This document shows, piece by piece, positions 9,141 to 62,260 of a DNA stretch of 64,000 nucleotides (positions within the stretch are counted from its first letter, which is position 1; each line of letters begins with the position of its first letter). Origin of the DNA: Octopus sinensis (taxonomy: Eukaryota); the NCBI RefSeq assembly GCF_006345805.1, contig NC_043021.1, forward strand, positions 23,250,001 through 23,314,000. The letters are read 5' to 3'. The position numbers and the translations under genes were made by a program. Under the pieces are notes generated by a model. The model did no database searches and was not told the origin of the DNA. It worked only from the letters and a program-made list of their open reading frames with translations.

Positions 9141-9222
<82 letters not shown>

Positions 9223-9239
9223 GTCTGTCTATCTTTCTG

Positions 9240-9321
<82 letters not shown>

Positions 9322-9428: not shown

Positions 9429-9466
<38 letters not shown>

Positions 9467-9467
9467 G

Positions 9468-9538
<71 letters not shown>

Positions 9539-30855: not shown

Positions 30856-31681
30856 TAATTAGTAATTCAGCTCTCAACCTAATTAATTGCATCGTTTTGG
30901 CAATGATGATCGAGATGTAAGCTACATTTGGAGCTAAAATAATTGGAAATTGATTCTTTAAAATATTTATTTCAAAGTTTTCGAGGTAAAAAATGGCAGC
31001 GTAAGGCAAAAAAGTGACTTTGAATCAAAATATCTCAGTTATTTCCAAAGGAAATGTGTAGATTAATCAAATTTAAAAGAACGTCTTCATTGGGAAGACT
31101 CTTTTAGTAAAAATCCCGTTATAAAATTCAACCGACAAAAAAGAAGTGTGGCTTTTAGCGACGTAGAATTGGTAACAATTAAATCCACGTCGAAGTGTTC
31201 TAATGCTTCTGATATTTGTTTGCCAAAGATTTCCAATAAAGTTTGATGAGTTATCCTTGTTCTTCATTGTCTTCTGAAGTGTTCAAATTGTAAAGTCAAT
31301 TTATAGGTACCCAGTATTTATCTTCTACCAAAAGGTGACCATTGTTTTATGAACTTTGAATAGGATTCTGATAGTTATGCACTGGTCTGAAGATGGTCAA
31401 TGTTATTGCAATAATTATTATTTTATTGTTTTGAAAACCTTTTTTATCATTACACTGCTACTGGAGTATGTACTTTTACTATTCCTTGTTTCAGTTATCA
31501 GATTGCGGCCATGCTGGAGTACTACCTTCAAGCGTTTACTCGAACAAATCATCCTTAGTACTGAATTTTTAAAATCTGGCACTTAATCAGTCGGATACCT
31601 TTTGAGGAATCACTAAGTTACGGGGGACGTAAACAAACCAATATTGGTTATCAAGCACTCGCATATATATATATAATATAT

Positions 31682-31748
<67 letters not shown>

Positions 31749-32253
31749 GAAGGGAATCCACACAGTTTCCTGCAGCAAATTTACTCACAACGCTTAGTTG
31801 ACCCAAGGTTATAGTTAATGTTATTTGTCCAAGGTGCCACACAGTTGGACTAAAGAATCCATGGATGTGAGATGTAATTTTCCTGCCACAGAACCTTGCC
31901 TGTATGGAGGAAGATATTTCTACCATAGATGAGAATGTTGACTAAAACCCATATTGTGCACATAAGAAAGTCTCCTTGTTATTTTTTTTTATTTTTGTAT
32001 TTTATTCCCTTCCATCTTTTGCTGTTTTGTTATCAGGTTTTCTGTTAGGATAATTAAGTTAGATTGAAGGAACCTATTCTTGTTCAAACAACACTTCCCA
32101 TAGAAATATAAAGAGGAATAAACAATTGTAGTGTGTAATATCAGCATTTACCCTGTTAGTGTTGACTAAAAAGCAATTTAGAAATGAACAAGAGTAAACA
32201 GATTTATTTAATTTTACTTATTTTAAAGTGTGTAATATTTGTCTCTTTTTCAG

Positions 32254-32325
32254 ATATTTGAACAGCAACCCAATAGAAAAATATGAAGATGGCGCTTTCT
32301 TATTCCTTCCCAGCATAGTTAAAAT
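32254..32325 (+). CDS. Host gene exon: 72-bp leucine-rich repeat, YLNSNPIEKYEDGAFLFLPSIVK (phase 2-2)
   Basis: tctctttttcag acceptor, gtaagc donor, 24-codon LRR consensus. Confidence 0.85.
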
Positions 32326-33879
32326 GTAAGCAAACAAGTTCTTTTGGGTTATAGGAAAATGAAAATAATAAAATGAGGTCATAAAATTCTCAATTCCTCG
32401 TTAAATGTTGTTGGTAATAAACAACAATGAGTTGATTTAAATTTCAGTGGATCAACATGATTTCCGAGCACTGTGTTTTATTATCGAAAAGATTATGTTC
32501 AAATATCAGAAGGTTGGTTTGATCTAGTTTACCCCATGTTTATAAATACTCATAATTAACTGGAGTCGAGAGAGTGGCCTACATACAAACCTTCATGCAC
32601 ACATATATAAATTTCCTGTGTGTGTATGCGTATGTGCATATATAGCATACACACACACACACATATATTATATTGTTATTACTTATTATATCCTTATGAC
32701 AACGGAGTTATCAGAAGGAATAAGAACCACAAAAATTCCATTCAAATATTTCTGATGATTGCTGTATTTGCCTCTGTTTTTCTACCACGAAGCCATTGGT
32801 AATTGGTAATCAAGGGGCTAAAATATTCTTCTACGATAAGCACAAGGCCTGCAATTTTGTGGCGGGGCTTGTCGATTACATCCACCCTAGTGCTCGGCTG
32901 GTACTTAATTCATCGACCCCAAAAAGATGAAAGGCAAAATCGTCCTCCAAATTTTGAACTCAGAACATGAAAAGAGAACACCCTGTAACTAAAGGGCCGA
33001 TTAATACGCAGTATTACTGTATCGCAAGATTTTGTGATTTGCCAATCTGATTCAATGTGTATGATATCTCCATTCTTCTGTGTTAATACACACACACACA
33101 CCACACACACACACACACACATGTATATATACACGTGTGTGTGGAGAGGTAAAGAAAGAGAGGGAAATTTAACACAATCCTATCCCTATTAAAGCTTAAC
33201 CACACTGCTTGGAATGGAGAACCTTTTAAGGGAGACAAATAGTAGTAAAACTAACAACGTTTGCGCAGTATTAGAGGTTGGGAGGTATACAAGCAGACCT
33301 ATTTCAAAATTGTATTTATCAGAACATTATAGAATTGCATTACGATGTAGCAAAATTCCTAAAAGGTTCAGAATATTCTCTTCTGAAAATCATATTCAAT
33401 AATTCAATAGCATATCATCTATATCTAGAATATCCTCTAAATCTAGTATGCCATTTATATATTCTCTAACCACATCCTACCTAATTTTATTTGGTATCTG
33501 TTATTTTCAATTATCATTTTCTCATTTCTCCTCTCTAATAAATCTACTGCAGTTTGTAGTACAGAGTGGTGTGAATGGATTACATTCATACCCCCATCTC
33601 TCTCTCTCTCTCTCTCTGTAACTCTAACTTTACTTTCTACTACCATATTCATGCTTGAATGTGTATGAAGATGTCTATGATTGCATGTGAATGGTCAAAT
33701 GAGAAGGTTAAACCTTCTTTTATTCATTTTCCCTCTAATTTCTACTCAGACATAAGACAATTGAACTGAGAGGTTTTTGGCTTTAGGGATTATCGGATGA
33801 CCTCCTCATCAATGGATTATTTGGTTTTGGTCAATACACAGCGAATGAGACAGACCAATGAGGCAGCGAGAGCCTGGTC

Positions 33880-34000
33880 TTATGCAACAATGATCAGGCT
33901 TTCAGTGGTACGCTTCAAATCACTTCGCTCAAGCCATGCCCACGATGCTGTATTATCCTTAACATCCTGTTTATTCTTTTCAAACTGTCCATGCATTCTC
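33880..34000 (-). mobile_element. R4/Dong-like LINE fragment
   Basis: MHGQFEK...SWAWLERSDLKRTTESLIIVA*DQAL. Confidence 0.6.
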
Positions 34001-34142
34001 ATTTAAAGAATGTATTCCTCCTCCTCATCATCATCAACATCATCATCATCATCATCACCTCCATCATCATCATAATCATCACCATCATAATCATCATCAT
34101 CATCATTATCATCACCATCACCATCATAATCATCACCATCAT

Positions 34143-34181
<39 letters not shown>

Positions 34182-34551
34182 ATGAAAACTCACAGCTTAC
34201 TTTTCTGGGTTTGATGGAAAGTGTTACTTGTTTACTGTTTATACTTCAAGAACCCTACGAAGAATTCTTGCGTTCCAAGCAATGCTGATTTCTTTTAGGT
34301 GTTCTACCTTCACACTTGTACCAATTGTTTTCAGTCATGCTGGGAGTTGAGTGCTAATACTTCCAAATGTACCAATTACTACTGGTATCACCTCTACTCT
34401 CTTCATTGTCAACAACCTTCTATTTCTCACTTCAAATAGTCATGGTTGTGTAATTATTATTATTATTGTTTTTGTTGTATTTTTGTTGATGTTGTTGCTG
34501 TTGTTCTTGCTGTTGCTCTTTTTTAAAAACACTGAAAATATTGTATAATAT

Positions 34552-34859
34552 CCATCTCAATATGGCTAACCACTAACGGTGGGTGTTACTGTAGCTTGTA
34601 GCCCCAGGAGATCATCGTCTCCAGCTGGCTTTAGGCACACTATCTGTGCCCTTATGGTATTTGCAAAGGGAGGTCATCCCTCTCTCATAAGCCTAAGTGA
34701 TACGCACGGACCGCAGTTTCGAGGTATTTGCCTCTTGTCAACGCACGGTAATCACCGGTTTACGATCGTAAACCGGTGAATACCGTGCGTTGACGATGAT
34801 CTCCTGGGGTTAAAAGCTATAGTAACACCCACCCTTAGTGGTTAGCCATATTGAGATGG
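34552..34859. mobile_element. Palindromic element: 68-bp terminal inverted arms plus a 58-bp loopless internal palindrome
   Basis: 34552-34619 matches the reverse complement of 34792-34859. 34737-34794 is self-complementary with one mismatch. Confidence 0.85.
34703..34747 (-). ncRNA. Type I hammerhead motif with U3-A8 core (UUGACAA)
   Basis: cgtgcg-ttgacaa-gagg caaata cctc-gaaa-c tgcg gtc-cgtgcg. Confidence 0.65.
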
Positions 34860-35472
34860 CTATTATACTTTACGTTGTCGAGCCGTTACTGTTTACATCT
34901 CGTTCAGAGATTTATTATTGACTGAAAATATTCAAATTGATATATCAAAATTGAATATTAATTTTCCCCTTCTTAATTAGGAGTATTACTATACATGTCT
35001 TTACCGCTGAAGCTATAAAATGTACAACACTGTAATCTCTCAGTTTCTGCGCTGGTACGTCTCTAGTTTTAAAACCAGTTGCTACATAGAATAAACACGA
35101 CCTTCTTAGCGCCAAAACCGCCCGTCTAAACGAGTTTTCTCAGACAGAGCGGCGCAAGATCCCTACCACCAAATTCCCGACACTAAAATGTCCCTAAACT
35201 ACAATAAAATAGAATCGTTTCAAGTGGCTAGTAATCTTATTTAAAGGTACTTTATTATTCAATATCTAAGCTAAAAGAGAAAAGAACCTTAGTGCTTCCA
35301 CTTTCTACTAGAAACCATTTCGCAATATTGATGTTATTAACAACACTTAGAAAAATGAATGCCATAGCGTTTATAAACCTGCTCAAATTTTATAATCTTT
35401 GTTTCTTGTCAAATCACATAGGAATTTCTCTGTTGATCTGAAACGCATTCAGAGTTCTCTTTATTATTACAG

Positions 35473-35630
35473 TTACCTCGAATACAATAAGCTTATGAAG
35501 TGTGGATGTCACTTGCCAGCCTTCGTTAAGTATATTAAAAAAGTCTATAACAGAACTGTTGCTGTCTCTGGCACGTGTCAGGAAGGCTCAGGGAAACGAA
35601 TACCTATACTGGATTATTCGCAATGTCAAA
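35473..35630 (+). CDS. Host gene exon: last LRR plus LRRCT, YLEYNKLMKCGCHLPAFVKYIKK...GTCQ...YSQCQ (phase 2-1)
   Basis: ttattattacag / gtaagt; 158 bp; CxC...C...C cap; phase joins 32325. Confidence 0.85.
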
Positions 35631-36715
35631 GTAAGTAAAATTCTCGTTTCTTCTTTTCTTTTATTATTAATACTAAGAAAATCCGGGTTATTCTCTGAAG
35701 CTTGCAATATAATGTCTTATGAAAGGGAAACTATAGATAAAGATATGAGGAATAAACGTTTTACCATTCGCACGCTTTACATTCACATCTTCTCTCCAAC
35801 GAACTTATAGATTCAACTGTATCACACAAACCATCAACAGCACACACACACACACACACAACAAAATGTCGCTAACAACCATAACTGGTTGATAGGTTAA
35901 CCAAACGGTTAATCAAACATTCATTTAGTTAATTCGTTAACAAATTGTTAACAAAGTGACGAATAATGAAGTGAAATAGAACCAGTACGTGTGTTTTTTA
36001 TTGGCTTAATGACCCTCCCGAGATACAAAAAAATGTTCCAGTATTCGATCCCCAGAAGAGGACAACTTGGTAACAAAGCCAAAACACTATCTTCAGTTTG
36101 GGTTTCGTGCCCATTCTCATCTGTTGTCATGAATATTGGCTAACGACTGAAAGAGTCTGATCTCAAACAGAAGCGGCCGAAATGGGATTCCTCCGAAAAA
36201 ACTGGAGTAGCTTTACTCGACACAGTGTGTACCTTGGAGATGAGGGAGTCTCTCCAGATCAGGTCGGTACTTTTCCGTATTGTGCCACTACATTTCCGGT
36301 AATGCGGACATGCGATTAGGATGTCACATGACAAAATCGCAAGATCGATTCTTTAAAATGATGAAAAACAGCAGGGAATGTAGAGTTAGACCAAAAAGTG
36401 ATAGCTAGAAAATATCCATAGCCTCATTTGGTCATGCTTGAGAATTCAATCAGTATGCGTATTGGCAGTTGCCTCTGATAGTACCCTATGCAGGAGGTAC
36501 CTGAGGCACCAGATGTCCTCATGACCCTCCCAGGAATAATGAGCGTTGAAGATGGTAGATGGATGGATATACAGAGTGTCGGTATTAAATATAACGATTT
36601 TATGTCCCATTATATTAAGGAAAACGTAGTGTATTGGTAAGCAAAGGCGTTAGAGAGCATAAAGTTGTAGCTGAGAAAAAAGCTGATATGGCGGACTGGA
36701 AGCCATCTAAATATT

Positions 36716-36917
36716 CTTTGCTACTCTAGGCACAAGGCATGAAATTTGGTGGGGAGAGGGCCAGTCGATTGGATCGACCTAGTACGCAACTGCTACCCCG
36801 AAAGGATAAAAGCAAAGTCGACCTCTGTGGAATTTGAACACAGAACGTGAAAAAACAGACGAAATACTGCTAAGCTTTGCGCCCGGTGTGTTAACGTTTC
36901 TGCCAGCTTGCCGCCTT
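36716..36917 (-). mobile_element. SINE family A-related
   Basis: 16-bp TSD aagccatctaaatatt (36700-36715, 36920-36935). Confidence 0.75.
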
Positions 36918-38529
36918 GAAAGCCATCTAAATATTGGAAGAGAGAAACCTGTATTCATGATAATTCATGACGGTTACCACAATTCAGACACCATCACTGC
37001 TGTTCAATGCTCTGGGAACACTGTAAAGTCGCAAAGACAGTGACATGGACAGTTGCAGTAGAATCTATAGGATAAAAATCGAATAAGAGAGAAAAGTTGC
37101 TTCAGAAGATCAAATACCAAGACAAGAAAGGGCAAAATGCAGGCAAAACATTCAGTAATGTAATTGTCTCTGAAAAAGATGGCACACTTCATGAAGGTCA
37201 AATAATGTAAACTGTACAAGCAAAGGGTTGGTACACATGGGTTAAGTGAGAGACAGAAAATGGCTGACGAAAGAAGGAGAGAAGAGCAAAAGTGGTTTTA
37301 TTCGAAGAAGAGTGAACACGAATGGAAAGGGAGAGAAGAAGGGTGCGGTATGTGTGCGTATAGGGGAGGTAAACTGTTAGTAGGAGCCAAGCAGTAGTGG
37401 GAGGAAAAAGGAGGAGGAGGAGGGGGAGAGAGAGAAGTGAGTGGTTTAGAGATACAAAGCAAAACGTTGGGTGCAAAAGTGAATGTGTGAGGGCAGCACT
37501 TGTGAGTATGGGTATGTGTGTGTGAGTGTGTGTATGTGTTTGAAGAGTGAGTGTGCGGGAATATGTATGAGTCTATGTACGAGTGTGTATGCATTTGTAT
37601 GTGTGTGTCAAATGTAGAATATCCAATGGGACAAAGTTGTGTGTATGTGTGTGTGTGTGTGTTTGTCTTTGTGTGTAATAAAGTGTGCAGAGAGTAACTG
37701 TGCTACCGAAGTGAGATGTGTAGGTAGAAACTGTGGTCTAGCGTGTGAAGTGTGTATAAAGTGTAAATGTGGGCGGAGGGACAAATAATGTGAGGATGTG
37801 GGTTGGTAAGAGTGATGCTGCGGAGGAGAGAGAGGAAGAAAACAAAGTAGAGAGGTAAAGTATATATTTAGCGCTTAGCCAGGAAGACAGTCAATGCTCA
37901 TGATCATTCAGAAGGCTGCTGTGATTGGTTGGGGGAAAGTAGGAAGATATCCTGAAACCAAAGACCAGCCTTGATTGTTTATAACGGAGAAGAATCCGGC
38001 ATAAACAGCGAAGGTTCCAAATGACAGACTTAAAATGGGGTCCGATGAAGCACATCACTCCAGAAAATATATGAGTCAGTATGTATATGTATGTACATAC
38101 GCACACACATACATACATAAATACATACATACATACATACATACAATACATACATACATACATACATACATACGTACATACATACATACATGCATACATA
38201 CATACATACATAAATACATACATACATACATACATACATACACACATACATACATAAATACATACATACATACATACATACGTACATACGTACATACATA
38301 CATACATACATACATACATACATACATACATACATACATACATACGTACATACATACATACGTACATACATACATACATACATAAATTCCCATGGATGCT
38401 AGAAGTCCTTCAGCTTGGTAAATTTCCAGTGAGCCATAATCAAAGCCATAGCTGACCTGATTCCATTGTGAGCCACCATCATGAAATTAAACACAAAGAG
38501 TGACTATTATCACTGACAGAATACAATAT

Positions 38530-39590
38530 CGCAAAGGCATATTCCAAGGGGACAACCTCGTTATGATGTCGTTTATACTTTCTGTAAACCTCATGTCATT
38601 CATGTTAAGGATATCTCATTGGTTCAAAAGGAAACAGAAATTACAAAATTGAACGCTGTTTCTTTGTGAATGACTTAAAAACTTTATGCAAAGAATATGG
38701 ATGAGATGAAAAAGAGCCTTGACCAAGTTACAACATTCTCAAAAAATGTGGGGTTGGCGTTTGTTCAGGATAAATGTTATATGGTTGTGAAAAGGGCGAA
38801 AAATGTAAACCAGACTAGCAACATCGCCATCAATGACCTGACAGTTTCCCCTATATCTGAAGAGGAATGTTACAGATATCTAGGGGTGGTTGAAAATATA
38901 TCTCATAACAGCACCTGTAACAAAACAAGTGCTTTTTTACAGGTACCATTAACTTACAGGTGTCATTAAAGTATAAACAAAGAACATTACAGCTGAATAA
39001 ATAAAATTTCGACCTCAGAAATCTATGCATTCAATAAAACATTGGCCCACAACGTGTTTGCTGTGCAAGTACTCATACTGACATTTGGGCTGTTTTATTG
39101 GTCACTTGATGAGATCCGAGCTGTTTATGTGAAAACCCGGAAAATACTGACAAGTACACATAATTTCCACATAAACGGTGAAGTAGACCCCCTCTCCTTA
39201 AAACGAAAACAAGGCGGCAGGGGCTTAACATCGATGCAAAATGTCTTTGAATGTCGTATCATATCCTTTCGGTAACATCTTATAACCACAAATGTCAAAG
39301 TGCATCCCTTGACCAAGTTTGCATAATTCATATGACTTGGAAGGCAGCTCCTTGAGCAACATTCCTTATCTGATAACAGAATACATGCTCAAAGATGTCG
39401 CACGACTCTACCGCAACGTATCATTAGATGAACAGATGAGTATCTATAAACAGAAGACTATGCATGGATATGTTGGTAGAAAGTTCCGAGATGATGGCAA
39501 TATTGATGTTGTTGAAATTCCAATGAAGGAGCCGTAGGTGTAGGATAGAAACTCTCTCCTTCTCTATTGCCAACAAATCTTGAAATAACA
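38530..39590 (+). mobile_element. Decayed R4/Dong-like LINE RT fragment
   Basis: IFQGDNL...FVNDLKLYAKN...DQVTTFSKNVGLAF..DKC...RKILT..HNFH...KQGGRGL. Confidence 0.7.
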
Positions 39591-39764
39591 GTGAATAATG
39601 ACATACATACATACATAATAATACATGTATTATTATGGCTGCCCCCTTGTTACCGAGTATGGCCATTGCACGAAGCTTAACTGTTACTGGTGCTGTGATC
39701 GAATGTGACTTTTTAGCCCAGCTAAATATCTACAATGTATTTTACAGGATTGGCAACTAAAACC

Positions 39765-39796
<32 letters not shown>

Positions 39797-39824
39797 CATA
39801 CATACATACATACATACATAATAC

Positions 39825-39855
<31 letters not shown>

Positions 39856-40373
39856 CATACATACATACATACATACATACATAAATGTGTGTATATTGGA
39901 AAAAGCACAATATTAGTGATCATAATTTTTATTGTTTATCCAAATATTGTTTTGCTCACTTCACATATTATGGCCTTCTTCACATACTATATGACATTGC
40001 AGCATAACTTAAATGAGATTCTCAGGTTTCATTAGGGAGTTCCCACTGCATCAATGGTTGCAACTTACAAATTTAATCCCTTTATTTGACTTGTTCAACG
40101 ATTTTCACGTGTTTGTTACATCAGAATACTAAAAGGACAACAAGTGGCTTTCATGCTTCTCTCAGTTGAATTTGTGACATTATTGAAACGTTCCGAATGA
40201 ACATGAAAATAGGTTTATAGTCTTTGTTAATAATTTGCTTTTATGTCTAACATGTATTGATTTCAATACTAACACGCATACATTTGTTTTTACATCTGAA
40301 AGAAAAATTTTTGTTATTGCTATGCATTGCATTATTTGGTTCATAAATACAGATATTTACTTGTATTCTGTAG

Positions 40374-40459
40374 ATTACTCGTTATTTCAACGGAATTTAC
40401 AGTGTCAAACATGTTCAGGAATCATATGCAATGAAGTGACAAGCTGTCCAGGAACAGAG
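40374..40459 (+). CDS. Host gene exon: N-half of LU (Ly6/uPAR-like) domain, YSLFQRNLQCQTCSGIICNEVTSCPGTE (phase 1-0)
   Basis: ttgtattctgtag / gtaaac; 86 bp; CxxC start. Confidence 0.8.
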
Positions 40460-42411
40460 GTAAACTGGAATATTACTTTCTTCCTTTTCGTTAAAATATA
40501 TCCACAACCGTCACTCGAAAGCCATTAAGGCCACATAGATTGTACTATGCTTTCGCTAGTTTTTTTTATGCGCCTGCGTAGACATACACACACCCTGTCG
40601 ATCTTCTTATTCATGACTCAATGGGACGAGAAGGATGTGACGATTGAAGAGAGAAATAGATGAACATCACTAGGTTGGGACACATTTCACTTGATTAGAC
40701 TGGGACAAAGTGAAATGAAGTGCCTTGTTCAAGGACGCAACGTTCTACCCTGTCCAGGAATCCCTATTCAAGAAACGAACACACGAACTTAGAGTGACCT
40801 TTCTCCGACAAACATGGCTGTCCTTAGAGTAGGATGCATGAATGTATGTGGCTATAAGTCAACTTGGAATCAAGGTTCCTTGTCGAATGACCTCGGGTCA
40901 CCAACCTTAGAGGGGTAACTGGAAGTCGAACCTGGCCCTACCAGTTCGCAAACATTACAGGGAGCGGATTGAATAAGTAAGAAGCAAATGAGACTTTCCT
41001 TCATCTGCTGGCCATAGCAAAAGAGGTTGTTTGATATACGAGGTTATGAACTATTCGAAACAGATTAAATCTTCCCTCACATCAAGTAGTACAATAAGCT
41101 CTCCAGAACATAATAGGTGGGGGTCATATTGTTTCACAGAAAGGTAAAACCTATAACTTTAAAACGCAGCTAAAACACAAATTAAAATTGTCAGGCATAT
41201 CTCTGAATACACAGTTGTACATTGGTGAAAGAAACACAAGAGAAACAATAAAAGACACCGGTAATGTCACAGATCAATGCTTCACATTACGAGAATATAG
41301 GAGAATAGAGCGTGACATAAGAGCATGGCTGCTATCTGTTGCCTGTTTCATTGTCTGTTCTGATCTCAGACCTTTCTGTTTTCTTGAAGCTGAGTTAGCT
41401 TATGTAATGATTCATTCATTTGCAATCACCGACTCTATTGGCTCTTTTGAAGACGCCAGCCTTCGGACACTATCATTGGTTATGTCTTCATGACATCCTC
41501 ACTCAGTTTGGGAGATCCAATTTCCTTTCTAAAACTTTTCCAACATTGGAAGAAACAAGTTTCAATTTCAAACTAAGGCAATGCAAATCTTATTTCTAAC
41601 TTCAATGTCTACATTTTCATTGCTTTTATTATTGTTAGGTGTTTGCGATTATTAATTGCGTTTTCGTGATGGATTCTTTTCTTTAAATATTCTTCTCCAT
41701 TTTGATATTTTTCGTTTTCAGAATGTCCCTTATTAAGTTAACAAGACCTTGGTTGTTTTCTCTCCAAATTTTATACTAATATACCGTATTTTCATATAAA
41801 ATATACTTGCAAAATAAAACGAAGTTTCTCTTGTGCGTTTATGTATTTTCTGTTTTATTTGCTTGGACTGAGGAGTTCAATCTGACAATTATATTTCTTT
41901 CATCTTTGGGTAAAGGCATATTAGGTTCTCTTGTTGGTGAGTTTTGTACGCATGATTTTCCGTAAATTTTATATGAAAAATTCCTCTTGAGCATTCCTCC
42001 AGTAAGAAGAAATTTTAGAGAATTGATACATCTTTATTAGGATAATTTAACCTATTTTAAGTTGGGCAATGGGTGACAGTCGATGCGATGCGGTTTTGAT
42101 ACAGACCGTGATCCGATGGCCATATCTCCTTGTGATCCGAGAGGTTTGGACACTGTAAGCATTTAAAACATGATTTTTGAATACTAAATAGCAATAACTT
42201 TTACGGAATTTTACTTATGCTGTTAACTTTCAACAATTCGGCAACTCTTTTACGGTTTCATTATTGCTTTTGGGTATTTTAAAGCAATGATTAAACTTAC
42301 TTGCATGGTAAACACCCAGTGGTGTTGTTTCTGTTGTTGTTGCTGTAATTAGCAGTAATCGTCCTAATAAATATTGTTGTTGTAGTGTATAATTTTCATA
42401 TATTATTACAG

Positions 42412-42595
42412 CCTGTATGCCGATTCGCAATATCAATGAACGGTGCTAAACTGAAGACTGAAAGGTCCTGCAGCACATACAGAAAATGTGTTGAAGCTAT
42501 GAGAAACAATACCCTTACATGCAATAAACGGACGAATGGCACGTCTTGTACTGGTTGTTGCGTCGGACACTTATGTAACAAGAATGATTTCATTG
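42412..42595 (+). CDS. Host gene exon: C-half of LU domain, PVCRF...SCTGCCVGHLCNKNDFI (phase 0-1)
   Basis: tattattacag / gtaagt; 184 bp; terminal CC-x4-CN motif. Confidence 0.85.
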
Positions 42596-42791
42596 GTAAG
42601 TGTTATTTATTGTCTAATATAACACTAACAAGTTTATTACAAATTGATAGTTAATAAGAACATTTTATAGTAATTAATATACGGGAAAATATTTTGATGA
42701 GTGTATACGTGTGTGTATATATATACTGTTTGCAATGCTCTCTCTCCCTCTCTCCCTCCCCCCTCTCTCTCTCTCTCTAACACACACACAC

Positions 42792-43084
42792 AGATGGAAT
42801 CAAACATCACGACATGAAGGAAAAGAGTAAAAGAGAGCACTTTTGGCGAGTGAGCAAAATATTGGTTAGAAAGCTGAATGCCTGGAACATAATTTCGGCG
42901 ATAAACTCGCACGCAGTCGCAGTAGTTCGGAATGATGCTGGAAAACTGAAGTGGACGGAGGAGAAGCTAAAGGAGTTGGACAGGAAGTCAAGAAAGGTCC
43001 TAACGATGTATGGAACCAATCATCCATGGGCAGGCATTGATAGCCGATACACGAAGAGAGCGACAGGAAGAAAGGGAATGATAA

Positions 43085-43088
<4 letters not shown>
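42792..43088 (+). mobile_element. R4/Dong-like LINE fragment; longer duplicate at 53341-53880
   Basis: LKWTEEKLKELDRKSRKVLTMYG.HP...R.Y.KR..G.KG.ISV. Both copies start at the same point after (CA)n. Confidence 0.75.
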
Positions 43089-43121
<33 letters not shown>

Positions 43122-43536
43122 TTATTATTTGAGTGAATAAAATCCAAACTTACAAGGGAAAAATTAAATTTAGAAATACTAAATCAAATTTCACACATTA
43201 TAAGATGTATATAAAAAATTAAAATAAAAAAAAACACTTTTTATCAATTCAAAATGAACAATTAAATTACACCATCTAGAAAATTACATATAATAGAAAT
43301 ATAAAAAATAAATAATAATTAAATGTCAATGCTTAAGTAAATTGCAAATAATAATAATAATAATAAAAACGTATATAATAGGTAGAATAAGAATAATATA
43401 TATATATATATATAGTATTTTAAGTGTATATGTGATTATGAATGTATATTTTTATCTACGTATGTGGGTTTTATGTGCATCTATGACGTGTGTCTCATTT
43501 ATAAAAGCAGAGATTATTTTCTATATCAATCCATAG

Positions 43537-43619
43537 GCTGGACCAAATCCCTCGTATTTCGTTTGATTTTTAAAAAGTTCAACGAATATAAAATCCCCGC
43601 TGAGAACATATCAAGAGCC
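43537..43619 (+). CDS. Host gene exon: SEA-like module part 1, GWTKSLVFRLIFKKFNEYKIPAENISRA (phase 1-0)
   Basis: caatccatag / gtgagt; 83 bp; conserved in the duplicate at 57610-57692. Confidence 0.8.
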
Positions 43620-44190
43620 GTGAGTAGATATCTGCCCTCTCTCTCTCTTTCTCCGTACACAGACGCACATGCGCGCACACATATGCACTGAACATGCGCA
43701 CACATGCATACAAATACACACTCTCACGCACACATACACACACACACATGCATATTTTATAGAAGAAATGTGAAACGTCAAATAAATAGTGAGGTTTCAT
43801 GAAATTCAGACAATCAACTCCATTTACTGATAGTAAACTATTACATAAAACTTTCTTTTTTAACTTACTGAATTTTTGCTGGTCAATAAAAAGACTGTTC
43901 TATCCACTATTTTGTCTTAATATATTCCGTGATATAATTTCCGATTCTGACAGTAAATAAAATCCTACTCAAATATTCACTAATCTTATGTTTACACACA
44001 CACACACTTCCTTTTGGTAATATTTTTCTTCTCAACATTTTCGTTTTCCTTTCTGAAAAAGAGATATGCTCGGAACATTAAAAACCCTCTCATTTCCCCC
44101 ACTTTACCGAGTGTCAAGCTAATATATTTATATATAATTATATTCTCAAACGCAGGATAATGCTAATAGTATAGCATGAACAGGATAAAG

Positions 44191-44389
44191 TATTCACCTG
44201 TTGCCGAAAACTCTGTCGGCGGCCAGATTACGCGTCTTATAAAGCTAGATGTATATAGCCTAACTTTGCAGAAGTATTTGTCGTTCGCGCAGTTTAGCTT
44301 AATGGTAAAGCACTTAAAGCGTAATCACAGGGGTGTGAGGTGTAGTCACATAGCTGGCCGCCGACAGATTTTTCTGCAAATTATGGATA
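44191..44389. mobile_element. Putative MITE
   Basis: Perfect 14-bp inverted core ctgtcggcggccag (44213-44226, 44354-44367) within degenerate ~38-bp TIRs; absent from the duplicated intron. Confidence 0.55.
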
Positions 44390-44511
44390 TTTCATCCGGT
44401 TCACGTTATATCATTAGCATTATCCTGCGTTTCAGAATAAAATTATTTCTTTATCTATTTTTCAATACATCTCAACGATTTTAAATCAAACTCAGTTTCT
44501 TTCATTTAATG

Positions 44512-44561
<50 letters not shown>

Positions 44562-44602
44562 ATATATATATATTTATTATTATATACATCCGGCTTTTGC
44601 AG

Positions 44603-44655
44603 ATGGAGCATGACCTTTCAACCGTGACGGGAACATTTAGAGTTGAAGACTGTGG
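44603..44655 (+). CDS. Host gene exon: SEA-like part 2, MEHDLSTVTGTFRVEDC (phase 0-2)
   Basis: ggcttttgcag / gtaagc; 53 bp; duplicate at 58032-58084. Confidence 0.8.
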
Positions 44656-44731
44656 GTAAGCAAATGCTTCTAGCACATTTATTCAAATTTATTTGCTTTT
44701 GTTCCAAACATTCGATTTTATCGCATGTATT

Positions 44732-45710
44732 GTTTGGCATCCTTTCTGTCTCGGGAGACAATGGAGTTGCGCATTTTTTTTTTTTTTCTAGGTCTAGTCC
44801 GGCTGTTATATTTTATTTCCTGTTACATTTCTTGCTGTGGCTGTGTAGTCCTATCCTGGACAAACACTCCCTCTGGCAGGTACTGCAAATGTAGCGAAGA
44901 CTGTTCCTGGCTGGTTGTAGTGCCAGGGTCTCTTGTTTATGTCTCTTCCTTTCTTTGCATTTCTCCTCTCTCTTTCTGTCACTCCTCTGTATACCCTCTT
45001 TTACTGTACGACGCCATTCTCCACGGTTGCCGGCGACTGCATCCCAACCGCTAATGTTGATGTTGCAGGCCTTCATGTCCCTTTTGCAAACATCCTTGTA
45101 ACGTAAGATCGGTCTACCCACAGACCTGGTACCGCTAGCAAGCTCTCCGTAGAGTATGTCCTTGGGGATTCTGCCATCTTTCATACGGCTAACATGCCCA
45201 AGCCATCTCATACGTCTTTGTGTGAGGAGTGCAAACATGCTTGGTATTCCTGCTTGCCTGAGGACATCTTTGTTGGGGATATGATTCTGCCATTTGATGT
45301 GGAGGTTTTTCGGAGGCAGCGCAGGTGAAAGATGTTTAGGCGACGCTCTTGGCGTGTGTATAGCGTCCAGGTCTCGCTTCCATACAGTAGAGTGCTGAGT
45401 ACACATGCCTGGTAGATCTTCATTTTTGTGGTCTTGGTCAGCTTATTGTTGTCCCAAGCCCGTTTGGAGAGTTGGGCCATCGCAGCAGCTGCCTTGCCAA
45501 TGCGTATATTGAGCTCAGCGTCAAGGGATAGGTTGTAGGTGACGGTAGAGCCCAGATAGGTAAACTTCTCCACCTCTTGTCCGATGTAGCCTGACCCATG
45601 ATGTTGGTCTTCTTAAGGCTGATAGCTAAGCCAAAGTCGTTACATGCTTGCTCAAAACAGTTAATGAGCCTTTGGAGGGCTTCTTCTGTGTCTGTTACCA
45701 GAGCGGCATC
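44732..45710 (-). mobile_element. 5'-truncated RTE-clade LINE
   Basis: DDAALV..FTYLGS..STLLYGSETW..LRWLGHVSRM..CSTCQRECLSRIGLHSH. 12-bp TSD atcgcatgtatt (44720-44731, 45711-45722). Confidence 0.92.
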
Positions 45711-46471
45711 ATCGCATGTATTATACGTCACAATAATCAACAGTGTTGTACTTGTGACCCACAATATACTAATTCATACATTCAATGAAATGTTTAAGTG
45801 TTTTATCAATGTTTTATTATACAAAGGACAAACAAACCCATATAAAGATACAGAGAGAAATGTATATATATATAGAATAAGTACTGGGCTTACAAAGAAT
45901 AAGTCCCGGGGTCGATTTGCTCGACTAAAAGGCGGTGCTCCAGCATGGCCGCAGTCAAATGACTGAAAATAAAGGTAAAAGAGTTAAAAGAGTAAAAGAG
46001 TAATGAGTAGGGTAGACGTTGATACCAATAGTAATTGGCAACTTGGAAGTATCACCACTCAACTACCAGCATGGCTGAAAATGATTGTGCGGGTGTGAAG
46101 GTAGACATCTATAACAATCAGCGTTGTTTGGAACTGCAAGAATTCTTCGCGGGGTCTTGAAGCACGATAGTAAACAACGTCACCCTCGACTGCTGGCTGT
46201 GGACAGCTGAAACTTTCCCTCATACCCGCAAAATAGCTGTGAGTTTCAGCACTAATAATAATAATATCTTCTTTAGGCACGAAGCTTAAATATATGGATA
46301 CAGTTGTGTATCAAATAGCTATTATGGCCTCATGGAGCTAATAAGCGGTCAGCTTTTTTTTATTTTATAAGAATGCCATATAGTATGGCGATAACTATAT
46401 ATATATATATTAATATATATATATATATTATATATATATCTATATATATATGCATATATATATACATAATA

Positions 46472-46516
<45 letters not shown>

Positions 46517-47879
46517 TATATATATTATATATATATATATATATATACATATATATACATACGCATTGAGTCGAAACAGGAGCAGCTGAAGAAGGGGAAT
46601 GTTCCTTGTATTGTTTGTCTTGTACTCTGTTTTTTCGTTGTTGAAAAGAGTCCGTTTCCTTGTTTGATTTCATGTTTTCTCGTTGTGTTCTACGCTTTTT
46701 TGTAGTGTCCTGTACTCATATATATATGTATATATACGTATAGATGTAGGTATGTACATATATGTATGTATGTATGCATATGTTTTATTTATTAAATTGC
46801 TGTATATATATATATGTATATATATATACATACATATACATCACACATATATATATACACACATATATATACACACATATATATGGGTGTGTATATATAT
46901 AAATTGTGGTGGCTATCGGCAATTTGAAACCAACAAGGAAATAATTCACAGTCACTAAGTGTGAAAAGAGTGCAGTGAGCACCAGCATTATTAGAAATAT
47001 TAGTCATAGACTCCTGAGCCACAAAAAGACATATGGTCTGTTTGCACTGACAGTGGGGAGAACATTCCCCACGGTAAGCCAGATGGATTAGATTAGCATG
47101 GTAATCTCTTATAGGAAGTTAATACTCATCAGCAATGCTCACTCCATTACGGCTGGTGGAGGCTAACTCACGCCTCTCAGTATCATTGAGAATGCCATAG
47201 GAATTAGGGACTGATTTCACAAAATGGCAATGTGAAGATTATAAAATATTGAAGGTAGCTAACACGCAATTTAAAACCAACCAGGTAATTATATATATAT
47301 TATATATATATATATATATATATTATATATTATATATATATATGTATATATATATAAAGTGTATTTAAAGATTTATGCAGGGAGTGAAGGCCTTCATGTG
47401 GATTTCTTAGTGGACGAATATATTCTTAAGACCAACTTTTAGTCACCCGCTTGTAGTTCGAGCCTTCTTAACTAATTCTGTTCTCAACCATATTGAATGC
47501 GGTTATTTTAGCTATGATAATCCAATCCTGAGCTATATTTGAATATAGTGATAGAAAGCGATGTGAAAGACAGTGGTGATGGTTGTGGAGGGGGAAGTGA
47601 TGAAAAGTATTGATGGTGATGGCGTCAGAAGTCTGGATGGCGTGTGTATGGCAGATATGGTGGCGATGGTGGTGGTACTGTTGTTTATCATGAAGCTTTG
47701 CAATAAGTTCCGAGTCGACAAATTATATCATTGCTTTGATGAAAATTGTTCATTGCTTGAGAAATATTCATGTTTCATGAAACTTAATATGTACTCAATG
47801 CATGGTGTCATTGTTGGACCCAAAGATTAACAGGGCAGCTTTTAAACGAATGTATATATATATATATATATATATATAA

Positions 47880-48459
47880 TAATAAATATTAGGGAATGAA
47901 TCCAAAATTACAGGGAAAAATCAGATTTAGGGTTAAATCCAATTTATAGTAAAATATTATATAATATAATTCGAGACAAAACCACTATTTTAAAACCAAA
48001 CAAGGAAAGACTTAATCAATACATAAAATTTTAATATAAATTAAATAAACCGCCACTACAAATGTTTCATGTCTGTGGTTTTTTGGTTTTTGTACATTTT
48101 TAAATATGAGAACTTTTATAATAGGTTTTTATATTCAATTGTTTATAGGGTTTATTTTAGATTATTTTAGATTATATATTGATTATATATAGATTATATA
48201 TAGATTATATATAGATTATATTTTTATTTTTTTACATTCTTTCATTGATAATTTTATTGTTTTATTAATTTAAATTATTTTAAATTATATTTTAAAATAT
48301 TGCTATTTTTAGATCGAAAATCCACCTGAAGATTGTCGGAGCAGACATGAAACATTTGTAGTGGCGGTTTATTTAATTTATATTAAAATTTTATGTATTG
48401 ATTAAGTCTTTCCTTGTTTGGTTTTAAAATAGTGGTTTTGTCTCGAATTATATTATATA
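47880..48459 (+). mobile_element. Penelope-like pLTR with inverted partial copy, between (TA)n tracts
   Basis: Perfect 118-bp inverted arms 47958-48075 / 48342-48459; related direct copy at about 57160-57305. Confidence 0.7.
48322..48364 (+). ncRNA. Type I hammerhead motif, canonical core
   Basis: ccac-ctgaaga-ttgtc ggagca gacat-gaaa-c attt gta-gtgg. Confidence 0.7.
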
Positions 48460-48463
48460 TATA

Positions 48464-48524
<61 letters not shown>

Positions 48525-48612
48525 ATGTATGTATATTTCTAGCTAGCTAGCTAGCTACATACATACATACATACATACCGACATACATGTATGTATTTAT
48601 TTTTTATTTCAG

Positions 48613-48767
48613 CTCAAACAGAAATAAAATATTTGCTATTTACTGTACAGTATTTAGCGAAATGACTGAAAGTCAACTGCGGCGCAATATCTCCCAAGTT
48701 TTGAACAAATCCCAGGAATTGCTTAACTTAGGAGTTAAGAAAAGCCACATGAAATTCCTTGATGAAA
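48613..48767 (+). CDS. Host gene exon: SEA-like part 3, SNRNKIFAIYCTVFSEM...KSHMKFLDE (phase 2-1)
   Basis: ttttatttcag / gtaagt; 155 bp; phases join both neighbours. Confidence 0.8.
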
Positions 48768-49661
48768 GTAAGTATCGTGTTTCTTATTAATTTATCATCA
48801 TTACCGTCATAATTAGCTTCATCAATCACCAACCTCTTCGTCGTTGTCGTCATCATCAACCACAGTAGATGATACCAAGCACACAGACTCTCTCCCTCTC
48901 TCTCTCTCTCACACACAACTATTTATTTACATTTTCTCAAAGCTTGGATAATTTAAAAACAACAATTTTATTTTGCGCTTTTCCGTTTCTTGTCCCTACG
49001 GAACTGTTTGTCTTTGCTCAGTTTCTTTTTAATTATACCAATTAACCGAGGGCAAAAATGTTTTCTTCTAATTTTGTATAGAAGTAGAAGATGCAGACTC
49101 TACTGGGCAGAATAATTCAAACAATTCCAGTACTTTCTTTAATTCACTCAGGAAAATTATTCAATGCTGCAAATATTTTTCCTCAGCGGAATTTCATTTT
49201 GTTTGAAGTGATCATATTAATTTTTGAATAAGAAACGATAGATACACACACAGCTCATACGCTTTAAACAATGTCTAAGAGATATAAGAGAGGAACAAAT
49301 CATATCCCATTGCCGAAAAAGGATATATTTTCGCTTCGTTTCCATTCATTTCATTTTACCATCGCCAAATCAATATAACGTCTACCTATTTCTAGCATAC
49401 ATTAGGTTTTGCGCTTCCGGTCAGTATGTCTAAAGAGTGATCAATATATTGACGAAATTCAACACTAGAGGTCGCGAAACAGACTAGCATTCTGAGTAGT
49501 CATATCCCGTAACCAGTTATATATTGCTCGAGAAAATATAAAAATATATATACATATACACACACCTCTATTTCGGGATGGCATTTTTTAATATATTTTT
49601 TTAAGAATATAAAAGTAAATATATATTTAGAAGCATACATACATACATATATATACATATG

Positions 49662-49709
<48 letters not shown>

Positions 49710-50003
49710 CGCGCGCGTGGGTGTTGTGTGTGTGTGTATATATATATAATTTAAATCAGAGATAAAACCACGATTAGGCAAATCAAGCAGTGAAAAACAT
49801 AAACCAAAACATAAAAAAAATTAATATAATATACAAAATATATAAACTATAAAATATAAAATATAAAATTTAAATTATTTAGATTGAAAATTAAAATTAT
49901 TAATTTATATTTATAAATTTTTATGAATTTTAATTTTTTTTTCAATTAAAAACTTTAATATAAGATGTATATATGTATATATATATGTGTGTGTATATAT
50001 ATA

Positions 50004-50034
<31 letters not shown>

Positions 50035-50039
50035 GTATG

Positions 50040-50070
<31 letters not shown>

Positions 50071-50596
50071 ATATTTATATATATATATATATGTATATAT
50101 ATACATAGATAATATACAGGATATCAAGTGGTTATGGTGTTTCAAGCAGCTTAATTTAATTGAAACAATAGAATCATTACATCAATTTAAATGCAATGCC
50201 ATCTTCAGCTGCATAAATAAAGAAATAGAATTTTAATAAGTAGGACACTTTGATGTAATTTTTCTCAAATATTTTAACAGTGCAAAAGATGGAGAAATTC
50301 ATGTTGTCGCTATTTTAGTTAAGAATAGACTACACTTCCAAGAATTGCATGGAGCCTGGTTGGGGTGGGGGGTCCTTGTGTTGTAAGGGATTGTAATTCA
50401 TTTCTAAATCATTTATCTCTTTATAAACTACTAAATGAAAAACTAGAAATCTGTCTATTTTGAATAAATATATATGCTCTCCGTGTATGTTTGCAACACT
50501 TCGTGTATAATTGTCCTCAAATCAGCCAGCAGGTCCAAACAATATATTTCCAAAATTAACTACTGCTGCTGCTGCTGCTACTATTACTACTAATAT

Positions 50597-50630
<34 letters not shown>

Positions 50631-50666
50631 GGCTTCTTTCATGTCCATATTTTGCTTCTTTTTCAG

Positions 50667-50781
50667 TATTTTGTGATAAAAGCACAACTTCAACTAACAA
50701 TGGAGCTTTCTCTTGGCCAATGACAAAAATAGGAACTACTGCTGAGATCCCATGTAATGGAAATGTAGCCACCAGGCATTG
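50667..50781 (+). CDS. Host gene exon: HRM (hormone-receptor) domain N-part, IFCDKSTTSTNNGAFSWPMTKIGTTAEIPCNGNVATRHC (phase 1-2)
   Basis: cttctttttcag / gttcgt; C...G.F.WP.T..G..A.IPC....ATR.C pattern. Confidence 0.85.
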
Positions 50782-51029
50782 GTTCGTTTGTATTGATTTA
50801 TTTCTACTCAAAGTTTGAAGTTTTCAGCGCCATCCTATTGTGAGAGAATGTTACTTGGTAGAGCAAATAACAGCTTTATAGATTAACAAGATAGAATTAA
50901 ACGTCTATCGGTTGCAATCTCTTGTCCCAGCATTTTTACATTTTATACATTATTTGATATAATTTAGCCTTGTCCTAACTATCTACGTTTGCTTTGTCGC
51001 CAATATTATACAAAGCTTTCATTTCATTC

Positions 51030-51190
51030 GTTTTTATGTTCTGAGTTCAAATTCCGCCAAGGTCGACTTTGCCTTTAATTTTTTCGATTCGATGAAATAA
51101 ATACCAATTGAGCACTGGGTTTGGTGTAAACGACTTATCCCTTCCCCTGAAATTGCTGGCCTTGTGCCAAAATTTGAAACCAATATTAGA
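51030..51190 (+). mobile_element. Diverged SINE family A-related copies (also about 32820-32970, 51210-51400, 52997-53200)
   Basis: gagttcaaattccgcc.aggtcgactttgccttt motif. Confidence 0.65.
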
Positions 51191-52191
51191 CAAGGCTTTA
51201 TGGTGCTGACCTGGCGGAATCGTTTCCATGCCGGACAAAATGCTTAGCAGCATTTCCTCTGACTTTACATTCTGAGATCAAATGCTACCAGGGTAAACTT
51301 TATCTTTTACCCTTTCGGGATCGATAAAATAAGTAAGCTGGGGTCTATGTTATCGAACTATCCCCACCCAAAATATCTGACCCTGTGGCAAAATTTGAAA
51401 TCAGCATTATTCAAAGATTTAAAGATTCTTGTAAGTTCCAGAATTTCACAAAATAATTGTAGCAAAGAAAGCACATACCTAGATACAGCCAATAGAATCT
51501 ATCAGTGATTCTGTTGGATTCAGGCTAATACTATTTATTCAATTTTATGATTACTGTAGAGCTATATATCTTGCTAGTACATGATGGTCATCCTGGGATT
51601 TCACTCATTACAGACTATGTAATACGGTCTCTCTTCTCTCATTTCTACCACGTCATTCCACAGGTTAAGCATCTAACTTGACTCCCAGAGGCTGAGCTTT
51701 ATTAGTTTTAAGACAAGACCAACTGGTGGAATCACTCAAATCTGTGCATATGTAGGAAAATATACATAAATCCATTGCTGCCGCTGTTGCTACTGATGTC
51801 TATGGTGGCGAAATATTAGCAACTAATTCCCCCATTCAACTTGAACTAACAACTTGGCTCCTTAATGCTGCATCACCTACACCGTTCCAACTAATCTTGT
51901 ATTGAATAATCATAAAAACAAGAAATTATTGTAAATAAAAACAGATGCAGGAATATTGTTTTTATATCTGAACTCTAGTTAGAAAATATTTGACATTAGT
52001 TTTGAGGATAGGGGTCAGGAGTAAATAATAGATTTCTCCCCCAAATGCAAGACACCATTTATCCTTCTTTCACTAAATTATGAGTTCAAATCACGACCAG
52101 TTCGAAGGTTTCTTATATTCCTCTGAGATTGATGAAATTCTCCTCAGAATGAATAAACTCGACTGACAATATTTAACATTTATTTTTTCAG

Positions 52192-52330
52192 TTCTCCAGA
52201 ACGATGGGGCATCCAGAAATGGCATCAAGTCAAAACCTGTCATCACAAAAGTGTTCACCGTTACTGGTATCTGGCAAGAACCAGACATGTCTCAATGTTA
52301 CAGCAGAACAGAGCAAAGGCATTGATGATG
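52192..52330 (+). pseudogene. Host gene exon: HRM C-part, frameshifted as assembled (TGIWQEPDMSQCY lies out of frame)
   Basis: tattttttcag / gtgagc. The G.W..PD.S.C motif starts at 52263 in a different frame from that imposed by the upstream exon. Confidence 0.7.
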
Positions 52331-58031: not shown

Positions 58032-58084
58032 ATGGAGCATGAGGTTTTAACCGTGACTGGAAAATTCCGAGTTGAATATCCTGG
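58032..58084 (+). CDS. Duplicate of exon 44603-44655, MEHEVLTVTGKFRVEYP
   Basis: Same length, frame and splice sites. Confidence 0.7.

Positions 58085-62255: not shown

Positions 62256-62260
<5 letters not shown>
58430..62260 (+). mobile_element. Near full-length RTE-clade LINE (APE plus RT; disrupted ORF about 59040-62190)
   Basis: RLASWNVRTM, LLGDFNARVG, DCDTDHSLI, NYRGISLLS, FIDLTKAFDSV, GVKQGCVLAP, LFADDAAL. Several frameshifts, including a 13-bp duplication gtatggaagtgag at about 61601-61626. Confidence 0.95.

Follow-up and report, generated by a model that had tools for sequence, protein, structure and literature searches.

The window analysed here, a stretch of 64,000 nt of the Octopus sinensis genome placed at 23250001-23314000 of chromosome scaffold C25 (C25:23250001-23314000; assembly of 2.72 Gb in 13,516 contigs), carries on its forward strand a chain of nine exons that is the middle of the gene LOC115224386. 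The gene belongs to a family of adhesion G-protein-coupled receptors (GPCRs) resembling ADGRG6, and it probably encodes a secreted protein that consists of the ectodomain of such a receptor, without the receptor half. All nine intervals are bordered by AG and GT, with eight donors of the GTAAG/GTGAG type and one GTTCG, and the intron phases that we recomputed (2|2|1|0|1|0|2|1|2) are identical to those of a preliminary description of the window, which had proposed the chain. Exons 1-7 are 100% identical to exons of the NCBI model LOC115224386 isoform X2 (P0003, 323 aa). The features of the gene are as follows, with positions beyond 64,000 lying past the window:

28787-28886, no strand: scaffold gap, visible as a run of 100 N, which severs the 5' half of the gene
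29204-44542, plus strand: one arm of a 15-kb inverted duplication (91-98% identity in a self-megablast), with the partner arm at window-equivalent 104684-88891
32254-32325, plus strand: exon 1, last LRR, 72 nt, phase 2-2, AG/GT borders; LRR_8 match over residues 2-31 (E 0.013); 100% identical in P0003
35473-35630, plus strand: exon 2, LRRCT-like cysteine cap (CxC...C...C), assigned from four conserved cysteines and the AlphaFold model
40374-40459, plus strand: exon 3, opening part of the LU (three-finger) domain, from LU profile matches
42412-42595, plus strand: exon 4, LU core of 184 nt ending in CCxGxLCN; 10 invariant cysteines, model confidence (pLDDT) 77-91
43537-43619, plus strand: exon 5, SEA-like domain part 1, from SEA profile matches
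44603-44655, plus strand: exon 6, SEA-like domain part 2, present in P0003; pLDDT 80-95
48613-48767, plus strand: exon 7, SEA-like domain part 3, present in P0003 and 94-98% identical in O. vulgaris models
50667-50781, plus strand: exon 8, first half of the HRM (HormR) domain, from HRM profile matches; skipped by the NCBI model
52192-52330, plus strand: exon 9, second half of the HRM, four bases short as assembled, from alignment with paralogues and with the unplaced contig C9761
57610-57692, plus strand: exon a of a second SEA copy (SEA2), a copy of exon 5 with AG/GT borders that encodes GWTKSFAFRLILKSFNEYKKPAENISRA; present in P0003 and in O. vulgaris models
58032-58084, plus strand: SEA2 exon b, a second copy of exon 6, located downstream of exon 9
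68859-68942 (past the window), plus strand: SEA2c, a copy of exon 7 cut at its 5' end, with homology starting about 5 nt into the exon
70347-70396 (past the window), plus strand: terminal exon encoding ...SSTGNGTEDRTAETNF*, with an in-frame stop, 1.4 kb after SEA2c

Joined, the nine exons form a single open frame of 348 codons. Exons 1-8 are open over 906 nt, in agreement with the preliminary description, which had limited the perfect chain to exon 8. The NCBI model starts at an intronic ATG and skips exons 8 and 9, so that both lie outside it; in O. vulgaris, the paralogue models P0001, P0006 and P0007, which contain the HRM cassette, match exon 8 at 87-92% and exon 9 at 64-69%. With 116 matches in the genome, every exon is represented by tens of paralogous copies, which rules out chance by far, and the nine exons are confirmed as real. 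Three of the domains correspond to exon cassettes that are all of phase 1-1, namely LU (exons 3 and 4, 270 nt), SEA1 (exons 5-7, 291 nt) and HRM (exons 8 and 9, 258 nt in the family), while each LRR of the paralogues is a separate 72-nt exon of phase 2-2. The phase 1-1 cassettes fit with the varied joins seen in family models, in which LU leads to GAIN directly (P0031, P0032), via HRM (P0035), via SEA (P0009, P0043) or via SEA and HRM (P0008, P0042).

Domains of the encoded ectodomain

The domain order LRR-LRRCT-LU-SEA-like-HRM, which the preliminary description had read from the window, was recovered in full by family profiles and a confident AlphaFold model. A profile built from 12 family members was run against 1.84 billion representative proteins and gave 72 matches, from which per-domain alignments were prepared and searched against the PDB. 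The LU profile found Lypd1/Lynx2 (9.6e-8) and Lypd6 (5e-7), followed by Lypd6B and SLURP-1. Among 20 diverse members, the 10 cysteines of this domain are invariant and CCxGxLCN is conserved, and the model of the domain is beta-rich, with a pLDDT of 77-91.

For the HRM profile, the best matches were the HormR domains of ADGRB2 (1.9e-6), BAI3 (4e-6) and ADGRG6 (1.3e-4), and after these the ectodomains of CRFR2 and PTH1R. HRM/HormR domains follow the pattern C..W...C...A.R.C...W..PD.S.C ahead of GAIN, and C3, W17, C30, A35, R37, C39, W67 and C75 of the family alignment are invariant in 20 members. In the HRMs of octopus members, about 20 additional residues (SSRTMGHPEMASSQNLSSQKC) separate the fourth cysteine from GxW (e.g. 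residues 275-295 of P0010, and exon 9 of the window); this insert is absent in other molluscs and in annelids and is modelled with a pLDDT below 50.

The best PDB matches of the SEA profile are all SEA domains (ADGRF1 at 4e-4, 1ivz at 2.7e-3, mucin-1 at 0.2). SEA domains have a ferredoxin-like beta-alpha-beta-beta-alpha-beta fold of about 100-110 aa, and this is the order of strands (E) and helices (H) in the model: E143-149, H159-173, E174-184, E187-196, H202-215 and E229-232, with a pLDDT of 80-95. The autoproteolysis motif G/SVVV occurs in some SEA domains only; we found none in this one, where the turn between beta2 and beta3 reads ...EDCGSNRNKIF... and is not conserved among members. The segment of exon 2 has four cysteines that are invariant or nearly so across molluscs and annelids and is modelled with a pLDDT of about 90; these cysteines and the confident model, rather than a Pfam match, suggest its identity as an LRRCT-like cap.

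With 30 octopus sequences as AlphaFold input the confident parts were the LRR and SEA1, whereas LU and HRM were resolved with 71 sequences that included other phyla, giving a pLDDT of 77-95 over a beta-rich LU, SEA1 and a beta-rich HRM. The joined peptide on its own gave only sub-threshold Pfam matches to LRR_8 (E 0.013) and HRM (E 0.057), and its single-sequence PDB search gave weak matches to LRR caps.

The two ends of the gene

Compared with 20 paralogues and with its twin on contig C9761, exon 9 (52192-52330) is short by 1 + 1 + 2 bases: one just past the acceptor, one T in CCGTTTACT and two in TACAATGCAG. The exon is 143 nt long in the family, reading ...RHCSSRTMGHPEMASSQNLSSQKCSPFTGIWQEPDMSQCYNAEQSKGIDDG, and has the form ...C SSRTMGHPEMASSQNLSSQK CSPFTGIWQEPDMSQC YNAEQSKGIDD G, with the canonical hormone-receptor-motif end GxWxxPDxSxC. 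This second half of the HRM is out of frame in the window as assembled. The translation of exon 9 in the preliminary description, 'SPERWGIQKWHQVKTC...', is stop-free, but the alignment with the 20 paralogues identifies it as an out-of-frame artefact. As assembled, exons 8 and 9 together measure 254 nt; the following exon is then read in the wrong frame and reaches a stop after nine codons, which explains why the NCBI model skips both.

These deletions are one of several observations that would be expected of a dead fragment, i.e. a 5'-truncated partial duplicate with a frameshifted HRM exon and no functional protein. Three frame-breaking deletions fall in a single exon, the NCBI model needs an intronic ATG to start as well as the omission of exons 8 and 9, the locus is one arm of an inverted duplication, and no LRR or signal exon was found on scaffold C25 in the 52 kb upstream of exon 1, even at E=50. 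Against this stands, first of all, contig C9761 (76.8 kb), which aligns to window bases 28887-74655 at 98.4-99.6% identity. Its alignment begins at 28887, the first base after the scaffold gap, so that the truncation of the gene matches the gap to the base, and the contig extends a further 32 kb upstream, where it carries an exon for a signal peptide and LRRNT, encoding MFHHVVSYRRSLVLILCTILFLETQA/DSDICKICTC..., and eleven 72-nt LRR exons. The simplest reading of this alignment is that C9761 represents an alternative assembly or a haplotig of the C25 locus, with the 5' half of the gene lost to the gap in the scaffold. The preliminary description had noted that the signal peptide, the earlier LRRs, GAIN and 7TM (the seven-transmembrane domain) were not in the window. 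On the scaffold we likewise found no signal peptide or earlier LRR in the 52 kb upstream of exon 1, and no GAIN or 7TM in the 134 kb around the gene; the signal and LRR exons appear to have been lost in the assembly gap and are present on C9761.

The comparison of the two copies also bears on exon 9. Gaps make up most of the differences between the window and C9761 (mismatches/gap positions of 48/106, 67/174 and 4/29), which fall in exons and introns alike. C9761 in turn has private 1-nt deletions in exons 1, 4 and 5, where the window is intact, as well as 4 inserted nt in exon 3. Gap-dominated differences and private 1-nt deletions in each copy are the pattern of long-read consensus error. 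We therefore do not take the exon 9 frameshifts as biological; on this comparison they are probably consensus errors. A decaying partial duplicate had been our initial reading of the exon 9 deletions and the absent 5' exons; the comparison with C9761 favours a gap plus consensus error instead.

The dead-fragment explanation is also at odds with the open frame of exons 1-8 and with the conservation of exons above introns. Over the 636 nt of exons 1-6, the duplication arms differ by six substitutions and an in-frame indel of 3 nt (99% identity, compared with 91-98% for the arms overall). The LU exon 4 (184 nt) is 100% identical in 7 paralogues, while its 600-nt flanks are 89-97% identical with many indels. 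Such invariance amid diverged flanks points to selection or to exon-focused gene conversion, and neutral decay does not fit. We consider it unlikely that the gene is a dead fragment and favour an ectodomain gene whose 5' half and exon 9 were probably damaged in assembly.

Its 3' end was examined for the receptor half. Downstream of exon 9 and the partial second SEA copy, the open frame ends in ...ETNF* after SEA2, and the same tail, ...AETNF*, also terminates 7TM-bearing relatives such as P0038. A tblastn search with the GAIN and GPS regions of P0031 and P0038 and with the TM5-7 exon of a paralogue as transmembrane query gave no match in 134 kb comprising the window, 20 kb upstream of it and 50 kb downstream, and a profile search of the genome found no 7tm_2 match on C25 near the locus. 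In these 134 kb, the gene of the window thus has neither the GAIN and GPS that precede the 7TM of an adhesion GPCR (class B2) nor a secretin-type 7TM (Pfam 7tm_2). Its downstream neighbour (P0014/P0015), a paralogue on the minus strand and thus convergent, is carried by the partner arm of the inverted duplication. Since the terminal exon has a stop, the GAIN/7TM searches were empty and the next gene is convergent, the gene is without a receptor half. The preliminary description had called it a GPCR on the strength of the HRM and had suggested a search for GAIN/7TM exons downstream of 64000; a terminal exon with a stop lies there instead, which is the non-GPCR outcome that it had itself named as speaking against its reading.

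The convergent paralogue (NCBI 'LRRC15-like' / 'slit homolog 3-like', window-equivalent 88541-114000+, L019-L021) encodes a signal peptide and contains many exons of one LRR each, besides LRRCT, LU and the first two exons of SEA. Beyond that point homology is lost, so that the gene looks 3'-truncated.

A complete adhesion GPCR, with GAIN/7TM exons past the window or lost in assembly, would be suggested by close copies that do continue into GAIN/GPS/7TM (P0009, P0038 and P0043 of O. vulgaris) and by the imperfect assembly at the locus, with its gap at 28787. Besides the empty tblastn search and the convergent neighbour, however, the in-frame terminal exon and stop 1.4 kb past SEA2c speak against it, and C9761 carries the same ending plus 4 kb beyond. 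This ending is repeated elsewhere: SEA2c, the intron after it and the terminal exon form a unit of 1.6 kb that was found at 88-100% identity in at least 25 genomic places, a lower bound from 40 scored out of 1351 candidates, and NCBI models of O. sinensis and O. vulgaris (P0002, P0004, P0007, P0010, P0012, P0016, P0039) end in the same way. A complete receptor is thus largely refuted and in our view highly improbable.

An adhesion-GPCR family close to ADGRG6

At the level of the family, the assignment to adhesion GPCRs made in the preliminary description was borne out, as paralogues and orthologues carry GAIN, GPS and 7tm_2. The family plan is signal-LRRNT-LRRs-LRRCT-LU-SEA-HormR-GAIN-GPS-7TM. 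In O. sinensis, the paralogue locus C29:1441958-1486602 has colinear LRRCT, LU, SEA, HRM, GAIN, GPS and TM exons, and at least 15 loci have an LU exon with a 7tm_2 exon on the same strand 28-59 kb downstream. Members in which Pfam detects LRR, GPS and 7tm_2, and whose ectodomain modules align in the same order, occur in further cephalopods (O. bimaculoides, Argonauta), in gastropods (Nucella, Haliotis, Plakobranchus), in bivalves (Dreissena, Saccostrea, Ylistrum) and in annelids (Capitella, Paralvinella). GPS scores are 45-58 bits in P0031, P0038, P0042, P0046, P0071 and others, and 7tm_2 scores are 84-177 bits in full-length members. In lophotrochozoans the family is of ancient origin, and in octopuses it has undergone a huge expansion. 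Contrary to what had been supposed, the design is therefore not lineage-specific: gastropods, bivalves and annelids share the ectodomain order, and both the expansion and LU-bearing GPCRs have been published (see below).

For the GAIN and 7TM of an octopus member, the best solved structures are ADGRG2 (6.8e-69) and ADGRG6 (8.8e-66). The HRM-GAIN-7TM part of the family aligns to a hemichordate ADGRG6-like protein with 348 bits and 32% identity, and to an insect ADGRA3 with 105 bits and 23% identity; in the hemichordate protein we also saw an N-terminal CC..LCN motif. SEA and HormR stand directly before GAIN in P0008, P0042, P0044 and the mollusc orthologues, and the gene of the window retains SEA-HormR without GAIN/7TM. 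The N-terminal CUB and pentraxin of ADGRG6 were not found; Pfam detects LRR families only, and LRR-LRRCT-LU occupies that position. The SEA-HormR-GAIN order and the similarity of GAIN/7TM make the family, as judged from sequence, an ADGRG6-like adhesion-GPCR family with an LRR-LU head, not an ADGRA-like one.

That the gene is an octopus-specific receptor of the ADGRA (GPR124/125) type with LU and SEA in place of Ig, as suggested by the LRR and LRRCT ahead of the HRM and by the NCBI label 'ADGRA3' of one O. bimaculoides member, is hardly credible given the scores above, the best solved relatives ADGRG2 and ADGRG6, the ADGRG6 order SEA-HormR-GAIN (HormR match to 6v55), the lack of a Pfam Ig match between LRRCT and HormR, where LU and SEA stand instead, and the same ectodomain in gastropods, bivalves and annelids.

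Among known systems, ADGRG6/GPR126 (zebrafish ectodomain 6v55) has the membrane-proximal order SEA-HormR-GAIN-7TM in common with the family, and most family members are named 'ADGRG6-like' by NCBI. In contrast to ADGRG6, the family has an N-terminus of LRRNT-LRRs-LRRCT-LU instead of CUB-PTX and a SEA-like domain without a GSVVV-type motif, and the gene of the window has no GAIN and no 7TM. ADGRA2/ADGRA3 (GPR124/GPR125) share LRR and LRRCT N-terminal to HormR, but have Ig between LRRCT and HormR and neither LU nor SEA. Lynx2/Lypd1, Lypd6 and SLURP-1, the best solved relatives of the LU domain (E 9.6e-8 to 3e-3), share the 10-Cys pattern and the C-terminal CCxxxxCN; they are single-domain proteins, glycosylphosphatidylinositol-anchored or secreted, whereas the LU of the family is an internal module of a multidomain protein.

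An octopus-specific 'group 3' expansion of adhesion GPCRs with GPS and 7TM, LRR in 5/22 and Death in one, was described by Ritschard et al. 2019 (PMC6408891); its genes, which are co-localised and have their expression in axial nerve cord, suckers and skin, bear signs of positive selection. This expansion is the same gene family as that of the window's gene, with clustered loci, LRR, GPS and 7TM, and the supplement of PMC6408891 assigns to class B group 3 two O. bimaculoides proteins from the match clusters P0042 and P0046, namely A0A0L8FLR8, which has a Death domain, and A0A0L8HDZ7. Group 3 was defined by the 7TM, with LRR, GPS, 7TM and Death as the only domains noted, so the gene of the window, having no 7TM, would not have been collected there. 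LU-bearing GPCR-like proteins were reported from starfish in 2024 (PMC11595613) and from molluscs and arthropods in 2026 (PMC13719153); for Mollusca, the 2026 survey lists LU-containing 7TM proteins, and its figure-legend domains include LRR, LU, GPS and 7TM. These proteins share the extracellular three-finger LU in a 7TM protein, a likeness by domain content, and both studies are at survey level, with the octopus expansion and ectodomain-only genes outside their coverage. In PMC6408891, PMC11595613 and PMC13719153 we found no description of the SEA/HormR modules or of receptor-less copies.

As the family was known already (group 3; LU-bearing mollusc GPCRs), our finding is mostly a correction of annotation. 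NCBI splits and mislabels the genes of the family as 'slit-like', 'LRRC15-like', 'ADGRG6-like isoform X2' or 'uncharacterized'. What is added is the full order LRR-LRRCT-LU-SEA-HormR-GAIN-7TM, kept across molluscs and annelids, which ties these receptors to ADGRG6 and not to ADGRA, and a recently amplified subfamily that encodes the ectodomain alone.

In two 7TM-bearing close relatives of O. vulgaris, P0038 and P0043, the GPS reads CSCDRLKSFAVLMDV instead of CxCxHLT(S/N)FALLMD. Both His and Thr are thus replaced at the HL/T cleavage site, and these receptors may lack autocleavage.

A putative stand-alone ectodomain and other features of the window

The explanation that we regard as likely is that the gene encodes a secreted, ectodomain-only derivative of an ADGRG6-like receptor. 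With the 5' exons of C9761, the full product would be a secreted protein of about 750 aa, composed of an LRR solenoid, a three-finger LU domain and the SEA and HormR folds. It may serve as a free extracellular ligand-binding or adhesive module, and could act as a soluble competitor (decoy) for, or as a partner of, ligands bound by the 7TM-bearing paralogues. Such a protein would be the gene-encoded counterpart of the 7TM-independent function of shed adhesion-GPCR N-terminal fragments; in studies of Gpr126 and latrophilin, these fragments reportedly act independently of the 7TM half.

Several observations weigh against this explanation or the assignments on which it builds. As it stands on scaffold C25, without a signal peptide and with exon 9 frameshifted, the gene reads at face value as broken; the twin on C9761 has its own indels in exons 1, 3, 4 and 5. 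Pfam scores for the HRM are 14-18 bits (16-18 in intact paralogues) against a cut-off of 26.2, the SEA of the Haliotis orthologue reaches 23.7 bits against a cut-off of 26.4, and neither LU (UPAR_LY6) nor LRRCT is matched by Pfam in the joined peptide, paralogues or orthologues. Foldseek returned no significant match for the multidomain model, the best relevant one being Lynx2 at a TM-score of 0.67 and a root-mean-square deviation of 3.4 A. Furthermore, the model of SEA2, which is an incomplete copy, is poor (pLDDT <67), a look-up of contigs encoding P0003, used as a route to transcript evidence, gave no match, and secretion and a decoy or trans-acting function are properties that we only infer.

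A more far-reaching proposal, which we put forward tentatively and hold to be possible rather than likely, is that, at least in O. sinensis and O. vulgaris, a 7TM-independent, trans-acting ectodomain function became a multigene family of at least 25 near-identical secreted LRR-LU-SEA-HormR genes. An intra-exonic rearrangement would have removed GAIN/7TM and spared the C-terminal exon, selection or gene conversion would keep the LU exon identical, and in sucker, skin and arm nerve cord the products could act beside the expanded receptor paralogues as soluble recognition or decoy molecules. On a practical matter, a stand-alone ectodomain family would be handy for ligand discovery of the orphan octopus receptors.

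The window as a whole is AT-rich (36% GC) and dense in microsatellites and LINE (long interspersed nuclear element) fragments. LINE-type reverse-transcriptase fragments lie at 44730-45612 (minus strand) and 59161-62258 (plus strand), 92% identical and inverted to each other; the first is 190 bp past the inner end of the inverted duplication (44542) and may mark its breakpoint. A 5-kb trinucleotide array at 16857-21827 grades from (TAA)n into (ATG)n, with GC down to 15% and a GC skew of up to +0.9. Long microsatellites include (TATC)n at 9142-9538, 23331-23794 and 25661-25913, a (CA)n-like tract at 7561-8128 and (TTC)n at 29203-29643. From 62641 to the end of the window at 64000 and on to about 67500 (L017) there is an array of units of about 550 bp, 98-99% identical, in direct and inverted sub-arrays, which sits in the 10.8-kb intron between SEA2b and SEA2c. 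Short tandem duplications at 1031-2294 and 10081-10444 have units of 256 bp and 184 bp with a common core resembling a tRNA or a SINE (short interspersed nuclear element), and some open reading frame (ORF) fragments resemble, by eye, transposases of the Tc1/mariner type. Finally, elsewhere in the genome, at C10:79.83-80.58 Mb (G000, loci L001-L008), more than 40 7tm_2 genes without introns (ORFs of 550-730 aa) are densely clustered in tandem; they probably represent the Methuselah-like 'group 4' expansion that Ritschard et al. 2019 described in octopus.

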